DNA of 64,000 bases from Hyphochytrium catenoides (lineage: Eukaryota; Protista; Hyphochytriomycota), in contig FLMG01001956.1 of the NCBI GenBank assembly GCA_900088475.1, positions 62,001-126,000 of the forward strand, in the 5' to 3' direction. Below, piece by piece: positions 9,757 to 31,173 of the stretch. The position numbers and the translations under genes are program-made. A model generated the notes under the pieces. The model made no database searches. It was not told where the DNA came from and worked only from the letters and a program-made list of their open reading frames with translations. Position 1 is the first letter of the stretch. Every line of letters begins with the position of its first letter.

Positions 9757-11163
9757 TACAGTGTAGTAGAGCTCTAGGGAAACTCGAGTATCAAATAATG
9801 GAAGAAGCAATATGCTGGGGACTCGCCGGTTTGCGAAGGCGGGTGCCTCTTTGCCGGGCTTGCAATAAGGTGCATTCCAGCCTCGATTTGTGCTTCGAAG
9901 TACAGCTGGCTCATCTGTCCGCTCGTGTCATAGCGGCAAAGTCAGGCCAACAGTGGTACCAGGAAGAAACATGCCAACGTGACGTTAACGAGTCCCCTCT
10001 TCAACAGACGTCGCAGAATTCGAACTCAACAGACGTCGCAGTATGACGGCATGGCTCGAACGGTGGAGATTGTCTCCTTGGTGTGCAATTGCAGTACTCC
10101 CTCGAGACTACGGTCAGGGATCCCGCTCCCACTCTCATCTTGCGAACGTGCCATCTCACCAACAGCGCTGCTGGAGTCTCAAGTCACGCTGGGATATCTT
10201 CCATCCATACAAAAGTTGTTAATGAGACTTTCCCTGGGTGGCGTCTTCGGTCGCTGTTTCATCGTTTGTTGGATGGTGAGAAAGATGCAATCACCCATTG
10301 CAACCTGGACTACCTGGACTACGCGAGAACGAGGACAAAGGAAAAGGAAAAGAGGCGATGAGACCGCTAAGCACCAGTAGCAGCATAATGCAGGAGCAGC
10401 AGGAGCTAGCAAGAACCAGAAAGCCAAGGCAGCAAGAGGGAGCGACGATAGTTATAAATAAATAAGAAAGAAGGAAGTTGAAGATAGAAGCTGGGCAATG
10501 TCTCAAGTCGTCGTCACCCTTGCATCCGTGGCGCTTCGCCATTTATTGAACTTCTGTAGTTCCCATAAAGTCGCAAGTACAACGCGAATTGGTAAGTATC
10601 AGGAGAATTGCCGTCCCTCCATGCTTTTGCTCTAGGCCCCTCTCCCTTGAAAAAGCGATGTCCTTGTACTTGTACAGGTTACTCGTGTTACGTACTTGTA
10701 CTTGTACTTGCGACCAACACAGTATAACTCTGAACACAACTACCCACTCAAAATGCACTCTGGACTGGGAGGGCACGGAGAGATTTGTTCCTAGTACAAA
10801 GAGCCCGATTATTACCAAATACTCTGTAGTCGACAGTACTTGTACTTGCTTCTACAGCTCATGACCTCATGACCCGTCTGATTCATCGGTCTAGCGGTAA
10901 ATCGGTAGATCGGCAAACTGCGCTTGAAGACTAGCTATCGGCAATGCTTCCGCAGAAAAGCATTATTTAGAAGGGTGATAATGGGCCCATATCGAGGGTT
11001 TTATGACTTATAACAAGAGCAAATGAGGGCAAGGGAGTTCGTGGATGGTGTCAACATGCGTAGGCCTCCAACCGGCCTGGACAACGACCAATATAGTGCA
11101 CAACAACCCTTGCCACTTTCTTGAGTAGGTATTTCGAAGTAGGGGCAGCCTTCCTTCGGTGCC

Positions 11164-14100
11164 ATGCACTCAGAGCAACGAGCGGAACAGCGGGACTTTG
11201 ACCTGCTCTCAATGCTCCGCAATCACTTCCGAGAAAACTACACCGATGAGATCATCGTCCTCCTCATCGGCGCTGCCACACTTATGTACCTATACCGCAG
11301 CTCGTACAGCAAAGGAAGAAAGCTACCCCTTGTGTCACACCTATTGAGTGGCCGGAAGCTGCCTGGTGAGGTAGGAGTGGCCTTCTTCTCACTCCTTTCG
11401 TCCTTCTCCTAAAGCGTTTTCACTTCTAGAGCTTGTTCCTCGCTAAGGGCACCTTTGAAGGCTACATGTGGAAGAAAGGTCACCAGGTCAAGAGCTGGCG
11501 CAGACGGTGAGACCCAAAATAAGCGAGGAAGATGTGCTCCTGGGTTCGCTCCCGTCTGCTTTTGAGCAGTCTCAGAGCAACGATATATGGTATCTACTCA
11601 CTACTTCCCTTTTCCCTATCGTAATAGGTACTTTATCCTAGACGCGAACAACGTGATGCGCTACTACACGAGTGCGGAAGAAGCACACAGCAATGCTTCT
11701 CCCAAAGGCTCAATGGTGGTCGCCAAGGCTTCACCGTGGGACAAGAAACAGAACGGGCTCGTGCTCTATAGTGATGTGAGAAGGACTTCAAAAAGGCGAA
11801 CTCATCTTTCCCCCGCTGTCCTCTTGCCGTGACCGTATCATTCCTTAGCTTTCCATCGTCTTTTCCGCGCAGCCTGTCTTCAGGTGGCGCTTGTGTCATT
11901 CCCTGTTACTGGTGTTGGGACTACTAGTAGCTTGTCCGACGTGTGCGCTATTCTTTTGCAGGGATTACGTAGTCCTAACAAAGTGCTATCTTTTTACCCT
12001 CCCTCTGAGCAGTTGGGCCAGAGCCTCTATCTGTACTGTGAGAACAAGACCTCGCAGCGAAAGTAAGGATAGCACTAGTAGGGAGATAAGCAGAAAAGTG
12101 GTAGTGGAACGAATAGAGTTAAGGATTATCTGTCGGTCTAGTCTCTTGCTGACAGTCGCCCTTCTATCAAATTGATCAAAGGTGGCTGACTATCTTTGAG
12201 ACACGACAGCGAGAGACCATTCTTGACAATAGGGACGAGGTTGTAGATCTGAGCAAGGATCTAAACCTCACTAAACACAAAATAGATGCGCAGGTGAACG
12301 ACTTTCGTCTTACTCGCTTCTGCTCTTCGGGTGACACCTGTTCCACATTCGCTCTGATGGTTTTTGTCGGTACAGGTGTCTTCTTGTTCTATCGTATCCT
12401 AATTGAGATTGGGAAATGCTGACTACGGACTTGTAGATCCTAAAAGTCAAGATTACGGGCCAGCGAGATAAGCAGCGTGACAAGCAGACATACGTAGTAA
12501 TGAAGGTACAGGGCTGCTTTCTCTTTGTATCCTGTTGCTTGACATCTGACTGCTAATGTTTGACGTCAGTTTAAGTCAGACTTGGACGATTCATTACAAG
12601 AGGGAACGTCCGTCGGACAGTCATCAACGAAGAAAGGCACAGACACATTTGAATGGAACGAGAGCTTTTCTTGGTCCTTCCAGGTCGGGGCACTTGTTTT
12701 CATGCAATATGCACGTCGGCCTGGGGCCTTCCCTTTTACATAAGTAATAGTTTCGCACGCTTCAATAATGACTAACATCTGCTTACCTACGGATTGGCTG
12801 ACTCTAGGATCACGTCAAAGATGATAACAAGGAGAGCTCTGCGGACAGTGATGACAAAGCTGTTGTTGTCCGAGCCCTGCCCGATACGTAAGTGTCATCC
12901 AGGCGTCTCCTTTGCGGTCTGTCACCTTAGCCTCCTTCATTGCTCCTGCTTCTATTTCAGGGTTGCTTTTTACACTTTCGGCGTAATAGTCGTCGTATGA
13001 TGCGCACGCCTCACGCTTTTTCGTATGCACACATCGTCGCGCTTTTTTGTCTAAACATCACCATACAAGTGCTTTGCTATCTTGCCCTATCTTGACTGTG
13101 ACTTCGCCTGGTGACGACGCTCCTGCTTTCAGAATGGTTTGTCAGCTCTGGGAAGTCGCGCTCTTTAAAAACAGAAAGGTTGGGGCTGCCCGGATTGCGT
13201 TGTATGACATGTTTGGGTTCCACGGCATAGAGAAGGCCGACACGACGCTGACCTGCCCTGGTACATGCTTAGCAGATTTTCTCGAGTCGTTCGACCTGAG
13301 TTTCACTCGTTGCTGACCTGAGTTTGATTGACCGAACGTCAACAACTTTATGGAAAACCGAAGCTATGGCGTTTTCTGAACCGATTCTCTTATCTTTAGT
13401 CATGACGAAAGAAGGAGAGCATCTAGGGGTGGTGCAAGTTCAAATACATTATGAAGGAACAAAAGCTACAGGCAAAGAACCCTTCGTTGTCTCAGCGCCT
13501 GCTGATCGAGTGAAGTTGAGGACGGGATTGGTAAGACGGGGTTTGTCTACATCTTGCTTGGACTTCAGAGTAAACGTTTACCTTCACCCTCCCCGACAGG
13601 TACTGGAAGGTGTCAGCAGTGCAAAGGAAGTCTTCGACCTGCTTTGGTGCGTACGCCTGGTCTCGGACCTTCTTTTAACCACTTTCGCCTGCTTGAGCTT
13701 GACAGTCTAGACCGATCACTGCTAAGTATCACCTTCATTCTCTTCGTCAGGTCGGACGAGGCTGGAGTTTTCTGGCAAAAATATTATGACGTCCGCGGTG
13801 ATACTGAGGTGACGGAGCAGAAGTGGGAGAGCTCCTCCAAATATGGCGGGTTAACGCGAGAAGTGGTTTGCAGATCCCCAACAAATGCACCCATAGGCCC
13901 ACCCTCTACAGTCGTGGTAACTTTTTGCAGACTGTTGTTTATGGTGTTTCTCGTATTTGAGACATCCTTTTTGGATCAGCTTCTTGCCTTTAATGACCTC
14001 CGCCCGGAAACATGATATCTTTGAGTTTGACAAGCACTTCTGGTCATAGTCGTTGAACTTTAAATTTCAGTCTTCAGTCAACACGACGGGGACTCGACCT

Positions 14101-15955
14101 TTTATACACAGTCGGCATCCCAGTAACATTCTCTGGACGCATGTTAAATTTGCCCGTCACTTTCGGTTGTTGTGTTGTGTTCAGACAGGCGGTTCTCAGT
14201 GTCTCTGCTTTGCTCTACCCTTTTCATACTGTTTGTTTAGACTATCCAGCAACACGCTGTCCTCAGTGAAGATGGGAAGAGTCTAGTCGTAGAGGTAAAG
14301 ACGGTAAGCAGAACCTGCTTCGTGTGTTGTCCGCCATACTGAGGCGAAGCAGAGCCTTCGATAAAAGTTACATCCTGTTGGCTCCGTACTTCGGTACTCC
14401 ATTCTAACGCTTCCCTCCTTTTTGTTGTTGTTGTTGATCCATTGCAGACCCTTCACGACATACCCTACGGCGACTGCTTCCACGTGAGTGCTGTCCTCTC
14501 CAGAAGTTTTATAGTTCCATGGTTCACTGCACTCTTTAGCCACCCATGCTAGTTTCGGCCCCTTTATACACTTATTTGAGAACTAATGCTGTTTGCCGTC
14601 TCTTTTACCATCTATGATATACCGGAAATGTGTCCACGTTGGCTATATGTGTAGATTGAAGTCATCTACGTTTACTCCACAACTGGAGATAACGTCGTTA
14701 GTGCAGATGTCTTCCTTGCGATACCCTTTTCAAAGGGTTGTCTCTGGAAGGCTAGGATCATTGCCAACACAGAGGCACAGGTAGGTCTATAATATGAACT
14801 CTGCTAGTTCGCAGTTCCTCATTGCATCACAACTGCCGCCAGACAGCACTCGTCTGTTGCTTGATGAGTTTGTTGTAACCTTTGGCCTAGGTGCCAAATA
14901 TCCTTCGTCCGATTCTGCAGAAGTGGTCATTACATCTCCTCTGTTTCGCATAAAGCGGACACTTACTCCTCTACATCATTATTTGTCTGACCTTGCCGCT
15001 CTGTATGCAGTATGGCGAGTCAGTGGACCTTATCTTCTCGTTGGCGAGGTCCCATATCAAGGAAGGGCCCAAAGAAGGTGGCGACGGGAACAGTTCTGGA
15101 TCCACCTCCAATTCTCAACGGATTCCGAAGATCGTGTCTAAAGTTTCCAAGCTCATGGATAGTGATATCGCCATAGAAGAAGTTTTTGAGAATGAGAGGT
15201 CAGCCGGAAGCACTTTAAGCTCTTTTTTAGCTCTTATGTTGAGTTCTGTCGTCCACGATTTCAAGAATACAAGTACCATCGACTGTGGTCGGGCAAGTTT
15301 CACGGGCCTCGTGCTGCATTCTCAGTTCTCATTAGTTTCTTCCTATCATGTCGTCTGAAGGTACAACCTCGTCACTGGTTGGGGCCCGGGACATCTCTTC
15401 CCCACTGATCGTCGTCGGTTCACAAACCGTATGGGGGACAAGGAGGTGGACATGCAGAGCATCAAGCTTCCAGAGAATTGGGTCTGGGAATCAGATTGGA
15501 AGGTGGACACCAAATATACAGACTGCGACGAGCAAGGTAGGAGGCAATGCCCTTATATGAGCCTTCGGCTGCTTGCAGGACTGGTAGATGGAGACCAGGG
15601 GACTATCGTTGCATCAGGGTTAGGGTAGTAGAGTGAGGAAGAACGTGAGCTAGGTGTCGGACTAGGAGAGACGTATCCTTTCTGTCCGTAAAAATGCGGC
15701 GTCCCTCCCCGTGACCAAGAAGGCGGAAGCCGCCAAATTTCCCGTCACTGGAGTTCCTTTGAGCTTACCTTGTGTTTAACATTTGTAGGATGGAGCTATG
15801 CAAGCTCCTTTCCACGATTCAATGAGCATTTGAGAAGAGGCAAGTCTCGTGCCACGAAGGGAATGTCAGTAGTCCGACGAAGGAGGTGGGTCCGAACATT
15901 AATGCGGATGCCAAATGCCAGTGGGACTGAAGGATCCAGTGCCATCTCGGGATAA
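11164..15955 (+). CDS. Multi-exon membrane protein with TM-PH-C2-VASt(StART-like)-DysF architecture
   Basis: N-terminal TM IIVLLIGAATLMYLY; PH FEGYMWKKGHQVKSWRRR|YFIL; C2 ILKVKI..TYVVMK..FEWNESF..VGAARIAL..GVVQVQI; VASt WQKYYDVRGDTEV..TREVVCRSP..LHDIPYGDCF; DysF EVFENER|YNLVTGW..LPENWVWESDWKVD..GWSYA..VRRRRWVR. Some exon limits are approximate. Confidence 0.85.
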
Positions 15956-23024: not shown

Positions 23025-23489
23025 ACGAGGCCTCTGCGAGATCAGGGCCTCTCGTGAACTATGGTTGGAAAGATTTCCTTCAGAAGCTAGAGGCTTTATG
23101 GCTCTAGCGTCACCGACCGTCTAGCACAGGGCGGGGGCACCCCCAGCTAAGACTTTAACAAAGTCGGTTTCAATTTTCGTCTAGCTTACTGCTACGACAC
23201 CGTTGGCCACGTGAACAGGGGACCCTGCCTATCTTGACTCGCGCACTTCTGAAATAGAGTCTCTTATCACCACACCTCAGGAATGAATCAACTTTGGCCA
23301 TGGGAGAGATAACGCTTTAGCATCGAGTCCTTGTATGGCCCAATTACCATCGCGGTCCCTTGCATATGTAATGGGACTGTTCCCTAAGAAATGGACGTTA
23401 ATTACTTTAATCTAGATACCTTCGATGATACTATACACTCCCTTTTCATAGGAGCGAGGTATTTTGCGCGCTTGGTCGGATCCGCTCGA

Positions 23490-26400
23490 CTATTCTCCAG
23501 CTGTGACCTCTATGCTTGGATGCCCCACAGGTTTGCCAGAAGGAGGAATAGAAACAGCTATTCGGCTATTGATTATGGATCCACTGCTGGTAACGGTGAA
23601 AGTGTAGGCATTCGGTTTGAGGTGTGGCACAGGAAGACTCTTTTTCCCTCCCCCGTGCAACGCCGCAAGGACCTCGCGAGGGTACTTGATGCCATGGCTT
23701 CCCACATGGTGGCCCTTCGCTCTCGCTATCAATCTCTCTTTCAAAAAGGCAAATCCGGGCACAGTCATCGTTGCAAGCGGAGGGTGAGGATGTTCTTTCC
23801 TCTCCTTTTCTGCCTGGAATATGGACGCAAGAGGAAACGTCGCTCGCCACATGCTCTCGGGCACCTTGGTGAGGCTCTCTAGGTTCTCGCACGCCGCAGA
23901 AACACCAGAGAAGCTAGCTGTTCTTTCCCTATCGCCTCTTGACGAAGGAAATCTCTCTTTTCTCCCCTTTGATGGCGGCTTGTGGAAGAGTACTCTAGGT
24001 GCTCCCTCTGCGTTCTGAGGTGGGTCCAGGCTTGCCTTTCCCAGAACTTCATCATCACTTGTTGCCCGCAAGTGTGGCTGTCATCATTACAATGGGTTGT
24101 TAGATATGCAATCACAGAATCAAAGGTAGAGAGGTCAGGGCGCTTTCAGAGCAGAACTTCAGCATCATACGTGACAGAGGGAGGAATGAACTGCAGTAGG
24201 ACGTACGGAGAGCTTTGACCCTTTCCCGGCCACGGGGCTTGATGGTCCATATTTCGAGGGGCTCTGTGGGTCGCCATAACCGCCCATTCCACCAGCTATT
24301 TCAATCTCAGCGTCGTACCTTCTGCCTGGTGGCCTCAAACCTGACGTATCAGCAAAGGAGAGGTCAATGCTAGACAAAAGAAAGACTTCAAATTCATACT
24401 ATTAGTGATCGGCGGATACCATACACTGCATTATAAGGAATGGAAGAAGTTAGTAAAGCAGATCCATGTTAAGGGAATATGAAAACGTGAAAGCTAGATC
24501 CAGGACCAACAGAGCGTCTTGTAGATAAACTAGCTACAAGAGAGATGCTACTTCGTTACCATAGGAATTTTCGGCTGATGTGCAGCGGCAGACAGTGTCA
24601 CACGCGCAGTGAGAGAAGTGGCAAGCGTCGCCTCGCCTGCAAACACCCTTATTCTGAAAGTCATAGCAAACTCCTAGCCCTTCGGTCGACTTGGGGCCTC
24701 CTGGCCCTTCAAATAAATGACAGAGTGGATCAGCTGCAATCAATGGGAATTGTAGGTAATGTCACGACAGTCTTACGTCCTCCTCCGTCCATTAGCTTCC
24801 GCCTCTTGCTATTCTGCTTTTCCATCTGCATACACACACAACTTAGAGGAAGTAACCGGCAATTGTGATGGATGAAGGAACATCATGTGAACGTTGCACA
24901 ATGAAGGAGCTGAAATGGCCTAGTGATAAGGCCCTCAGAAGCATCAAACAAGATTGCCAGGGAGGAGTGCCCCCCAACAGCTACTGGTATCCAGCATTTA
25001 AACTAGGCTAAAGAGATCAGACAAGTGCTGCCAAAGGCGCAGGTAAGCTCGTTAAGAAATAAGTAGCATACCACTTAACAACAACCTCACCTCAATCTGT
25101 CTCTTTGCTGCGAGTGTATGTTTTCTTAATCGGGCGACAAAGGGCGCAGAAATAGCTGGATCCTCACTAAAGATGCCCTCGAGCTCGTCAATAGAGATGT
25201 TGTCAAGAATAGCTTGCTTGACCGTAGCTGCCAACGAACTTCAGTTGACTGGTTAGACGCCGGAGTGAAGAAGGAAAAAAACGCCTCTCTGAAAGAAAGT
25301 GGGACAAAACAGCAGCGGTGCGATTGACTTACATATCTGTTGCCTGTTTCAGATCCTCTCTAGTCCTATGTAGCCGCCATCCACCTGAGGAGAGCCACTG
25401 AGTTGCCGTCTTTTAACTTGCCACCCGTCTTCGATAAATATAAAGAGAAGATACCTGTGCGCCATCCTGGCCCTCTCTCAGGGTGCACAAAGTCTGGGTT
25501 ACCGACTTCCCAGCCCTGATTGGGGTCTGGAGACGGAATGAAGGTCGGCCAGGACTACGTAGACGCAACGTCCAGTCACCAGTAAGTCGTATAAGTTCTA
25601 CCCAACTTTTCAGGGAGAGACCTACCACATCGTAGACACACTCCACGATCCTCTCCCCTGACTTAACAGCACTATCTTTAGCAACATTCTCGAAGAGCTC
25701 TATTGTTGTCATACCCAGGGCCATACAGAGATGCAAAAAGCCTTTGTAAGTAGAGCCATTGAAGGGGGAAAGGAATAGGAATAACGATTGGTAAGGCCAA
25801 AGAAATTAATAAAAAAGCACACACTAGCTAATGAGTAGCAAACGGATGCCTCGTCACGGAGATTACCTGGCTCCAGGCTGATCCAATCATGGAAAACATG
25901 CGCTTTCCTATGAGACAGATGGAGCTTGAAGCGTGGGCTAGGTGGTCTTCCTCTCCATTCTGCCGCTAAGATGAAGTTACAAGTCTGCCTACCCCCAGAA
26001 GCAGCCCGAAACAATCCCCTATTGATGCCAGACTAGCGAAGCTAATGAGTGAGAATGTATCATCAGCGCCACTGCACACTCACTTACCTGGTATGGCGCA
26101 GTGGAATGACAGAAAACAAGCCCCACTGAGTTGTAGGGTAACCTACATTCATGTCCCGAAAGGTGAGTTAGCATAAGAATGCAAGTTTACAGGGATTGAT
26201 TAGCCCTCAGAGCAAGGCTACTACCTCCCATACCGTGACCCGCCCGTTTAGCAGATGCCAAAAGGTTGACCATGCAATGAAAAAGAAAGGAAGGAGAGAT
26301 CTGGAGACCAAGACCAAAGACAACAACACAAGATAAGGCTGAGCGCACACAACATAAATCAAGGCTGAAGAAATGGCCATGGAGGAGAGGACGGAGAATT

Positions 26401-27674
26401 GGAGTTGAGAGTTAACGAATCATCACCCATGCCTAATAATAGCTTTGAGAAGGAAAGGCCAAACTCTATAAAATGCGTACCTTGGTATGGATTTAGTGAC
26501 ATAAGAGAGTTTGTTGGCGGGGTAGATCGCCTTCAACACAACGGGGAATGCATCCGGCGGGCATCCAGGTGGGGCTGGTAGGGCTTTCTTGGGACCCATA
26601 ACGTCATTCTGAATAATCTTCATATAATAGGGTCAGCCGTCGTATCATCATTAGAGATAATAGGAAATATAGGCTAACAGAGTCAACAGTGCATGGGAAT
26701 GGAAGAGGCAACAGCTTCGGGTCAGCAAAGCTAAAGCACGATTGAATAGCGATGTTGGAATACATGTGTGGTCGCTTGGCGAACTTGTAGAAATTAGCAA
26801 ATGGAGAATATTATGCACCTTTAATCGCTCGGGTAAGGTTAACCGCATAACGTTGTGAGCGTTAATGAGCAGCATATCCGAGACCACAAAACGAGTGGAA
26901 CGCTTGGTTGCATCCTACATGCTTTGCCGTCAGTGCTGACCAAACATTGTCCTATACTTGCTGAGACAGTCTTGAGTGCACCTTTTCAAGCACCAGATCC
27001 CCGTCCAAGAGTGTCCAGTGGTGATTTGTTAGGGTTTGACCTTCCGGGTTGGCCTTCACTCTATCTGGGCGTAGTGGGAAGTGCAAATGAACCTACTTAA
27101 CAGTGATCGAAAGCCCCGCATTAGCGTGCCTCGCGTTTCGTTCAACCAATCCTTCAGTAATATCCAACGTACCCTCCGACACTCGTAGCTACCATCTACC
27201 AGAAAGCATTCGTTGTGCATAATCAGGAGGAGAAGTCTGGGGCCACAGTTATGATGTCAGATTGCCGTTATAACGTATCCTCTATGTCAACCTCCAGGAA
27301 AGCGATAACAAGGAGGTACCTGATCCCGTCCGCTTGTTCCGTCACAAAATACGGCTCATCGACGACCCTCTCTAGTGCTGGAAGGAAATATCATTCGTGC
27401 GTTAGGAGATAACCTTGATCAAAGTAAGTCGTGACATACCTGCTCTCGTCAGTGGGACCGGTTCTGCCCAAGGGAAAAGCGGCTGTAAGTGCGGGTCAGC
27501 ATATCCAACCATCTTCATCAGCTTCGTCTGGAGAGAGAGCTGTCGACAACAACTGATTAGGATACCACTCCTTGCCAACTTCATCAGCTTAAGGACCTGA
27601 AGGCTAGGGGTTAACTTTTCCCCCGGAAGTTCCGGGAACGCGTCTGCGCTCAAAGGAGGTCGGATTTCTGCCAT
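23490..27674 (-). CDS. mRNA-capping guanylyltransferase-like protein (NTase + OB fold) with degenerate catalytic motifs, followed by an NLS, a CCCH zinc finger and a low-complexity tail
   Basis: Spliced model MAEIRPPLSADAFPELPGEKL..LFPWAEPVPL..YFVTEQADGIR|LLLLIMHNECFLVD..HHWTLLDGDLV..FVVSDMLL..ERLK..NSVGLVFCH..GLFRAA..RIVECVYD..VKQAILDNISIDEL..KRRKL..CYDFQNKGVCRRGDACHFSH. Motif order and spacing follow Ceg1/RNGTT guanylyltransferases. Confidence 0.8.
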
Positions 27675-27836
27675 AATCCCTAAAACCTCAGTACCGCGGC
27701 TGCCAAGAGGCCACTCAAACACTAAGCTAACGCATGCAAGCCCATTCGGTGTTGAAACAACAGGTCAGCAGAGTGATCACCATTGATCAGCGAAGAGCAA
27801 ATGAACAGTACTGATGATCCGTCTGACCGCTATGGG

Positions 27837-28316
27837 TCACGGTCCTTCTACAGCACCCTTGTAAGTGATATGTGGCCAGGGTAGGGCTCTGTCTGCACCT
27901 GACTCTGAGATGTAGGCTTCCTCGAGGATAGGCACTCTCATCTCATGAGGTGGTTCCTGATGATGGATGACATGATGAGGGAGCTTGTAAAAGGATCTGC
28001 TTGCACTTGATCCAAAGGTCAATCAAGCGCACAGGGTGATGTCTGCGATGATCTGAAGTGTGTCTGTACGTCTGTACGCATACTGCATACCTTCCTTCAC
28101 AGAAGACCTCGAGATCATAAAATTGGTTAATCTCTGCTTGATTGAGGTTCGGTAATCAGGCTCATGATGGCTTTTGTGAAGTACGAAGTGATTGCAACTT
28201 CCAGAAAGGAAGAAGCGGCATGGAGGAAAGGGAAAGGAAGTCCAAGGAAATGCATCGACTTCCAGGGCTTCGAGTGCTTGGATGAGTGCTGCTGCATTCT
28301 GCATGGTGCTCCTCAT
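27837..28316 (-). CDS. Possible small two-exon hypothetical protein
   Basis: Two adjacent ORFs (MRSTMQNAAALIQ..SVKE and ..SFYKLPHHVIHHQEPPHE..VEGP*) with a plausible donor GAAG|GTATGC between them. No recognised family. Confidence 0.25.
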
Positions 28317-28530: not shown

Positions 28531-31173
28531 ATGGCGTCTTCCGATGGCGGAAGCCGGGATCAAGGCTACCCTGTCGTTCTCCACGTTTACGATCTGAGTA
28601 GAGGCTTGGCATCACAGATGTCCCTTCAGCTGATTGGAAAACAGATTGATGGCGTCTGGCACACGGGAATTCATGTCTATGGGAAGGAATGGTTCTACGG
28701 TGGCGGGATCCAGGTATGGGATGCTCGGTCACTCACATCATGTTGCCATTAGTCTAATCCCTAGCCTGCAGTGCTCGTCAGCCGAGGATGTGATTCGCAC
28801 TTATGGGATGCGACCAGTCGAGCAAGTGTCGCTTGGCGTGACCAATTTGGACGAAGAGGTTTTCGTGGAGTTTTTATCGGAGGTACGGAACGTTCTGACT
28901 GCAGTCATTTCCAACATGAATGTTCACGCTGAAACTCTGTTATGGCCGCGTTCATTCTGTAGCTTAGTAGACATTTTACTTGTTCTTGCTGCTAGCCGCT
29001 GCGTAGAATGCGGCTAAGATGGTTACTGACACATTCGGTGCTGCAGATCTCGCCGCGTTTTACGGCAGCGACTTACAATCTACTGACGAACAACTGCAAT
29101 AACTTTACCAACGAGTGCGCCCAGTTCTTGCTAGGCCGCGGCATCCCGCAACACATCATCGACCTTCCAAACGAAGCCCTAAATTCCCCGATTGGGTAAG
29201 CGGTCTAGAAGTACCTTGTCTCTGGAACAGCTATCTTGCCTCTGCAAAAGCTACCCTACTTGTGGCATGTCAGCTGTATCAATCCATTGATGGTGGTTCG
29301 CGGAAGTGAGCCTTAATCGTCTCCGTCATGTCCTCATCAACACTAGGAAGTATTCTTGTTTCTCGCTCTCATACACCTCTCTCTCAGAATGTTTCTTCGA
29401 CCGATGCTGGAGAATATCCAGCGTGATATGGGTTCTCACTTGGCAGAGCACATACCTTTCAACAATCATCAGTTGCACAGCAGAGCAGCAAGAGATCTGG
29501 CAGCTCGATTACAAAACATGGCACCACTCCATCCCACCACAGGTAGAGCCTCAGCTCTTCCCGATAAAGTCCTTGTTCAACGGCGAAGTCCTCTCTCTCT
29601 CTCACTCCAGAAGCGACCTTCCTTTGCTTGTCACCTCTCCTCTCTGTCCTTTACACAATCCCTTCGTCTTTTTGTCCTTTACACAGTTTCTTCTTCCTTT
29701 TGTCCTCTGCTCTGCTTACGCTCCTATTGAACCTGCAGGGGAGCCTCAGAAGGAGCTTTTAAATCAGTACTCTCGGCCATTCGTTTCTAAAGATATAACT
29801 CAGGCGAAGGTTGCTTCCGAGAAGCTTGTATCTAGCTGTCTCGGCCTTGGAGACGAGGAAAAGGCTTCTCTGAGAAGCTTGGGAGATGGCCTTATGGCCC
29901 AAAAAAGCCCGGATTGCAATCAAACTCGGCTGCTATCCAAAATTCTTTTGAATCCCTCAACTCCAACAGATGCAGTCTTCCCTACTCTCTACCTCCTGAG
30001 GGCCGCCGCATACTTGGGCATCGGGGAAACAGTAAACGATCTTCAACCAGCGATCGAGAACTTAGCAAGCAAACTGGCTCTTTCTGATCTACTAACGATT
30101 GGGACTCAGCAAATGGTAAGCACTGCTACTGACAGGGCCTGACTTTCATCCCTTCAGGTGACAGATTGCAGCCTTGTATCTTCTTGTTTCTTTTTTTCTT
30201 GGCAGCTGCACCATACCTCCAATGTAGGAACTAATTGACCTATGTTACCGGCTGTGTCGCAAGATCGTCTGTCTACTGATGAACTTGCTGGGCTCTTCCG
30301 GAGGCAGACGAGTCATCTTCCAGGAGAAAGTCCTTTCTCAGATAGTACCCTACTCCACAAAAGGTACGTCGATCTCGTAATTGTGCTGGCTTTGAGTCTC
30401 TCGTCATCCGTGCTTGTCTCCCAGCCTGTGTAGCGCACGATTGTAGTTACATAACACGTCTCGTCTTAAGTGCAGCATCTTTAGGTTTTTGCTGTTCTCA
30501 GCATTGCATTGCTCCTAACACTGTGCTCCTTGACTACGTTACTCTAAACTTTGTTTGCGCTCTACCCTATCATGTGTCACCTCCTCCGCGGCATCCCAGC
30601 TTTGCGTTCCAGTAGCACGGACTTGCGGAGGGCCGTTAGTGCTTTACTCTTCAACTTTGTCATATCTATAACCAGCGATGGCGATACTATTCCTCGCCCA
30701 GCTCAAGAGGTCAGTAAGCTGATAACTCCAAGGTGTCCTAGGGTTTTTGTTAGCCTTTCTCAATTTAGTACCGTTGAGACCTGTCTCTAATCTTGAGTTT
30801 GCAGATATACACAGCTATCTTAGAGACTATCGCTGAGGAGCCGGATACTGTTACACTCCACCGAATGGTTCTAAGCTTAGGCCATTTGTTGAAGGTAGAG
30901 ATTCTTACCTCGTCTATCCTGTCCAAACCTTATCTCCTACTCCCGTCCTTTGCTTTACTTGAGTATGTCTCCTTTTTGGCTGTGAAACCGGACTAACACA
31001 ATCATTACATCCAGAAATTCGATGGCAATAGGCAGCTTAGCCAGCTGAGAGACTCCTCAGAGGCGGTGCATGCACTACTGAGGAGCCATCTTATTAATGC
31101 GGAGCTCTCGGCCATGAGTCATGAGATTTTGGGAATGGTCACTAGACGAGAGGGTCCTAGCTCAAGGAGCTAA
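28531..31173 (+). CDS. PPPDE/DeSI-1-like desumoylating/deubiquitinating peptidase fused to a PUL domain
   Basis: VVLHVYDLSRG, catalytic His in VWHTGIHVYGKEWFYGGG, catalytic Cys in YNLLTNNCNNF, IPQHIIDLP. C-terminal ARM-like PUL features AVFPTLYLLR, AVSALLFNF and LHRMVLSLGHLL. Stop at 31171-31173. Confidence 0.9.

Follow-up and report, generated by a model that had tools for sequence, protein, structure and literature searches.

A predicted catalytically dead paralogue of the capping guanylyltransferases, probably under selection, in Hyphochytrium catenoides

The usual view of capping guanylyltransferases is that they are strictly catalytic enzymes, essential and present in a single copy. The Lys of motif I is the nucleophile, the lysines of motifs V and VI hold the phosphates and a Phe stacks on the guanine, and mutational work from the Shuman laboratory, done with Ceg1 and with the enzyme of Chlorella virus, reportedly found the motif I Lys and residues of motifs III, IV, V and VI to be essential. 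The sole described precedent that we found for a related domain without activity lies in CMTR1, whose guanylyltransferase-like domain is poorly understood and non-functional, is thought to aid substrate recruitment or protein architecture (PMC6414751, PMC3941023), and is absent from the sampled stramenopile CMTR1 homologues, those of two diatoms (PMC3113572). Here we describe a predicted gene on the minus strand of a 64,000 nucleotide (nt) stretch of contig FLMG01001956.1 of Hyphochytrium catenoides (the window), located at positions 23490 to 27674 of that stretch, which we read, with a probability of about 0.6, as an intact gene for a catalytically dead paralogue of the capping guanylyltransferases that is probably under selection.

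A preliminary description of this locus had stated that no family like it has been described, which is too strong given the CMTR1 domain. Both proteins hold a non-functional guanylyltransferase-like module, and CMTR1 is a cap-related nuclear protein. In CMTR1 the domain lies behind a G-patch and an RrmJ methyltransferase domain and before a WW domain, whereas here the guanylyltransferase-like part is the body of the protein and there is no methyltransferase: a Pfam scan of the upstream open reading frames (ORFs) and of the exons of at least 20 residues (all exons other than 2, 7, 11 and 13) gave no match to RrmJ/FtsJ, G-patch or WW domains. CMTR1 was not among the PDB matches of a profile of yeast guanylyltransferases at E-values of up to 10, with the presence of a full-length CMTR1 chain in that database unchecked, and the present protein is far closer to the true guanylyltransferases than the CMTR1 domain appears to be. 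Our literature searches brought up no account of a capping guanylyltransferase that is both dead and stand-alone.

Homology to capping guanylyltransferases and loss of the catalytic residues

Single exons were used as queries in the database, family and structure searches, and the joined protein was compared locally with sequences that had already been fetched. Three exons gave weak, colinear matches to the Pfam family PF01331: exon 2 (27320-27377, minus strand, as are all features of the gene) with model positions 10-34 at 17 bits, exon 4 (26958-27092, HFPL...HHWTLLDGDLVLE) with positions 63-87 at 13.7 bits, and exon 5 (26819-26914) with positions 86-115 at 12.9 bits. The PDB search with exon 4 matched a single chain, that of Candida albicans Cgt1 (1p16), over motif III with an E-value of 0.03. 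Exon 1 (27440-27674), which runs from the N-terminus to FPWAEPVPL, was aligned by hhalign over residues 8-32 with residues 4-29 of Cgt1 (E-value 0.061), and this colinearity with the Cgt1 N-terminus indicates that the predicted protein starts where Cgt1 starts, with no upstream domain missing. Exon 8 had no match in the PDB search or by hhalign.

When the joined model was compared with a profile of seven yeast Cgt1 sequences, it scored 71.4 bits in one continuous alignment, in which residues 65-281 correspond to profile positions 38-253, and which takes in exon 3 (27173-27236) and exon 6 (26481-26617). For scale, human RNGTT reaches 104 bits, and the active Chlorella virus (PBCV-1) enzyme 1ckm 68.8 bits, against a similar profile made from six of these seven sequences. 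Identity to Candida Cgt1 was 32.5% over 206 columns. The guanylyltransferase fold proposed in the preliminary description is thus borne out by the profile score, the colinear PF01331 matches and the match to 1p16. The seven reference sequences came from a metagenome scan seeded with an alignment of motif III, and are all ordinary intronless genes of the Candida type with intact motifs, found on contigs of 25-152 kb; two of them are near-identical to 1p16, and their contigs are probably yeast genomes inside metagenome assemblies.

The motifs were assigned from a residue-level alignment to Candida Cgt1 rather than by eye, and their coordinates were verified. Motif I, in the YFVTEQADGI stretch of exon 2, reads QADG (27325-27336), with Cgt1 K67 replaced by Q93 (CAA at 27336-27334). 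Motif III in exon 4 reads LLDGDLV, with E126 of Cgt1 replaced by D151 (Asp codon at 26999-26997), and motif IIIa in exon 5 reads FVVSD, with F144 replaced by S176 (Ser codon at 26881-26879). Motif IV, in exon 7 (26088-26142), reads VGLVF with a Val (codon at 26126-26124) in place of D220, while motif V, in exon 8 (25867-26032), reads LFRAAS (26014-25997), so that its KxK has become RxA, with K241 replaced by Arg and K243 by Ala. All of these changes had been listed in the preliminary description and held in the alignment anchored on Cgt1, which additionally located motif VI in exon 11 (25333-25384, GWRLHRTREDL) as REDL (25361-25350), where the Lys of the RxDK consensus is a Leu.

In the nucleotidyltransferase domain none of the six catalytic columns is kept (K to Q, E to D, F to S, D to V, K to R and K to A), as against 53 of the 124 columns that are invariant in the yeast enzymes (43%). 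No K.DG peptide is present in the six frames of positions 23300-27900, and thus no alternative catalytic exon lies hidden in the introns. Besides the Lys that would form the enzyme-GMP adduct, the residues that contact the phosphates, the ribose and the guanine of GTP are gone, so that the protein as predicted is unable to cap RNA and is unlikely to bind GTP, and its status as a pseudoenzyme is well supported.

The intact enzyme expected elsewhere in the genome, a separate paralogue with a KxDG motif, came to light when the whole assembly (61 Mb, 4759 contigs) was searched with Pfam in six frames, so that the present gene is not the sole guanylyltransferase. This search gave three PF01331 loci: the present gene and one locus on each of the contigs C863 and C815. 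The copy on C863 (approximately 11100-14800, minus strand) has all six motifs intact (KTDG, VLDGEFVV, MLMIFDALAL, DGIIF, YLKWKWADLITIDF and WRFKMVRPDK, with motif V reading KWK and motif VI reading RPDK) and also matches PF03919. About 1.1 kb upstream, on the same strand, is a match to the Cet1-type triphosphatases (PF02940, 33 bits), which either forms one fusion gene with the guanylyltransferase or stands in tandem with it. The copy on C815 (approximately 11400-14200, minus strand) is a second degenerate one, with MYDR, DGVLV, VTD and EGVVF at its motifs, and is preceded by a dead cysteine-phosphatase-like domain in which the P-loop reads FDDFGFNLTG. Motifs I, III, IIIa and IV are degenerate in both this copy and the present gene, and the two have in common a stretch RLxI(I/L)QN(D/E)(V/I)(M/L)GP(K/R)K, which in the present gene falls in exon 6 (IIQNDVMGP...); they differ in that the N-terminal dead cysteine-phosphatase domain belongs to the C815 copy, which has no CCCH finger. 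The best segments of the present gene reach 43% identity over 28 residues to the C863 enzyme (exon 2 against the exon with KTDG) and 40% over 35 residues to the C815 copy, and this distant similarity to both paralogues indicates that the present copy is old.

Compared with the cellular guanylyltransferases Cgt1, Ceg1, Schizosaccharomyces pombe Pce1 and RNGTT (PF01331 plus PF03919), the predicted protein has the same order of motifs in its nucleotidyltransferase domain, a colinear N-terminus, a segment resembling motif VI and a putative C-terminal helix, whereas the catalytic residues of motifs I, III, IIIa, IV, V and VI have all been exchanged, its OB (oligonucleotide/oligosaccharide-binding) region contains an insert of 33 residues, a CCCH finger and a long tail have been added, and no triphosphatase domain is attached. 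As predicted, it is a member of the guanylyltransferase superfamily by fold and not a guanylyltransferase by chemistry.

Reading frame, OB region and the join to the CCCH finger

The window is eukaryotic, intron-rich DNA with a GC content of about 49%. Tracing of the exons gave a gene of 16 exons with 745 codons and a stop, from an ATG at 27674-27672 to a stop codon at 23492-23490, in which all 15 introns are of the GT-AG type and have lengths of 43-338 nt. The joined exons total 2238 nt, divisible by three, and encode 745 residues with no internal stop, in agreement with the coordinates and the in-frame splicing of the preliminary description. With codon usage learned from four further long ORFs in the window, the log2 odds per codon were +0.09 in the chosen frame versus -0.24 and -0.33 in the other two frames and about -0.3 in the introns, and the GC content was 53% in the exons versus 44% in the introns of the gene. 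An Rfam scan found nothing within the gene, and a repeat scan found only short two-copy matches. The ORFs upstream had no Pfam match; one of them, at 28634-29014 on the plus strand, showed a very weak similarity to PPPDE peptidases (PF05903, E-value 0.13).

The OB domain, which had been described as retained, is probably kept: the matches to it are weak, colinear ones near motif VI, and exons 8-12 have no Pfam match to PF03919. The presumed domain starts in exon 8, after motif V. Exon 9 (25626-25699, ...GERIVECVYDV) holds a putative OB strand that was assigned by eye, without statistical support, and exon 12 (25091-25238) holds the putative C-terminal helix. In the surroundings of motif VI the local hmmsearch gave a second domain at -1.6 bits, and exon 12 had a weak match to the intact C863 paralogue by tblastn (E-value 0.53) and a weak colinear match by hhalign (E-value 0.39). 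Between the IVEC strand and motif VI, exon 10 (25455-25554) contributes a Pro/Gly/Trp-rich insert of 33 residues, SWPTFIPSPDPNQGWEVGNPDFVHPERGPGWRT, which is required for the reading frame; neither Cgt1 nor the C863 enzyme has anything that corresponds to it.

The remaining exons encode the second half of the protein, in which the basic patch, the finger and the further CxC..CxC cluster noted earlier are all present. Exon 13 (24777-24825) opens with an ATG and reads MEKQNSKRRKL..., with the KRRKL patch at 24807-24793. Exon 14 (24560-24706) contains the CCCH finger with C-x8-C-x5-C-x3-H spacing (24668-24609), which scores 27.1 bits against PF00642 (cut-off 20.5), directly followed by CACDTVCRC (CxCx4CxC, 24608-24582). 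In the PDB the finger matched those of Unkempt (E-value 3.6e-5) and TIS11d (7.9e-5), and also TTP, MBNL1 and CPSF30 with E-values ranging up to 0.03. Its spacing and flanking residues are like those of these proteins, which suggests a finger of the kind that binds single-stranded RNA, and it may bind RNA here as well; it differs from them in being a single finger rather than one of a tandem pair, and in the CxCx4CxC cluster that comes directly after it. Exon 15 (24207-24340) is a Gly/Pro-rich linker and exon 16 (23490-24077) a tail of 195 residues followed by the stop codon, and no recognisable domain was found in either. For exon 16, which is present in a single copy in the genome, there was no homologue of 107-341 residues in a word search of that length range and no match in the metagenome scan, the ESM Atlas gave nothing usable, and an AlphaFold model made from the single sequence had a pLDDT (predicted local distance difference test) score of 38 and was uninformative.

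That the guanylyltransferase-like half is joined to the finger half through intron 12 seems quite likely to us. This fusion depends on one predicted intron (25090-24826, 265 nt), and the join of exons 12 and 13 is drawn from the sequence alone. The same DNA may be read as two neighbouring genes, the first made up of exons 1-12 and ending at an in-frame stop located 16 codons into what we call intron 12, and the second encoding a separate CCCH protein of about 306 residues from the ATG that opens exon 13. The exact position of this ATG at the start of the exon fits such a division, as does the end of the guanylyltransferase homology within exon 12, and the acceptor sites of the gene carry little information with which to judge the junction. 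On the other hand, the donor (GAG|GTGAGG) and acceptor (TATGCAG|) of intron 12 have scores that fall inside or exceed the range seen for the gene's other 14 introns, the splice phases match, and the 265-nt spacer has a GC content of 46%, like that of the introns. Two genes would also require this spacer to accommodate a 3' end and a promoter, the nearest long flanking ORFs being roughly at least 450 nt away, and the stand-alone homologue of 107-341 residues that a separate protein might have shown for exon 16 did not appear. A division into two genes is therefore possible, but on the unlikely side.

Selection, decay and residual activity

The preliminary description had called the product a selected pseudoenzyme. 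The dead enzyme and the intact gene both stand, and selection is indirectly supported by the open frame, the codon usage of the chosen frame and the contrast between 43% of the invariant columns kept and none of the six catalytic ones. The same observations bear on the view that the gene is a decaying, unexpressed pseudogene of a capping enzyme, with which the alteration of all catalytic motifs and the lack of an orthologue in the search with exon 1 would agree. In a pseudogene, however, one would not expect 745 codons in 16 exons without a stop or frameshift, nor a coding-type codon bias confined to the chosen frame, and neutral decay would not give a scaffold preserved at 43% around catalytic positions that have all changed. 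The very low similarity to both paralogues points to an old copy, which would have broken if unconstrained, and we regard decay as improbable.

Even less credible is that the protein is still an enzyme, using another nucleophile or performing a different reaction on RNA 5' ends. Motif I retains its Asp, Gly and Arg, motif III its Asp-Gly and motif VI its Arg and Asp, but the four lysines that contact the phosphates have all been lost, together with the Asp of motif IV and the Phe that stacks on guanine, and we know of no covalent nucleotidyltransferase that works without the motif I Lys.

The searches for relatives were made with single exons, as queries of 45-195 residues. Scans of viral and prokaryotic contigs found no relative, and the metagenome scan with the motif III alignment returned only ordinary Cgt1 genes and no relative of the dead gene. 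The sole match of exon 1 (78 residues) among 1.84 billion representatives was a protein of 2105 residues, which we rejected as a spurious tandem-repeat protein: it consists of dozens of near-identical repeats (…REFPGEYLNHARAVLKWLETAWSSFK…) that resemble FPELPGEKL...LKLMK, and the match is a repeat artefact.

Several points weigh against an intact, selected gene of the structure given here. Its transcription and every one of its splice junctions are predictions, and the ATG that begins exon 13 would allow the finger half to be a gene of its own. For the OB domain no match was significant. The single-exon queries turned up no orthologue from which a ratio of nonsynonymous to synonymous substitution rates (dN/dS) could be taken. 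With regard to function, the adaptor role considered below is one that we infer, and R157, one of the Cgt1 residues that contact the RNA polymerase II (Pol II) C-terminal domain (CTD), aligns to a Leu.

Possible role and implications

In our reading, capping in this organism is carried out by the intact C863 enzyme, adjoining or fused to a Cet1-type RNA triphosphatase, and the dead protein may serve as a nuclear, non-catalytic adaptor, in which the old enzyme body would offer the transcription or capping machinery a surface to dock on, while the CCCH finger would hold RNA. In Cgt1 the Ser5 phosphates of the CTD are held by R157 and by R140, K178 and K193, and the manner in which the CTD is read differs from one capping enzyme to the next (PMC4066402). 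Besides the Leu at R157, the alignment places an Arg at R140, a Lys at K178 and a Pro at K193, and as CTD reading is specific to each enzyme, this comparison neither supports nor excludes binding of the CTD. In its full version the proposal has an old, stand-alone pseudo-guanylyltransferase, retained by selection, that links an RNA-binding CCCH finger to a surface on which Pol II, Spt5 or the triphosphatase could dock; this would represent a new kind of cap-proximal regulator, but is doubtful at present and is put forward as a tentative suggestion.

If true, the protein might act in trans in the manner of CMTR1's guanylyltransferase-like domain, in a lineage where CMTR1 itself is without such a domain, and together with the C815 copy it would mean that this lineage keeps two non-catalytic descendants of a capping enzyme beside one active triphosphatase-guanylyltransferase gene. 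More generally, a dead but well-preserved copy that carries an RNA-binding finger would demonstrate that the capping enzyme's non-catalytic surfaces can be put to use by themselves, and it would provide a natural separation-of-function protein with which to study the binding partners of these surfaces.

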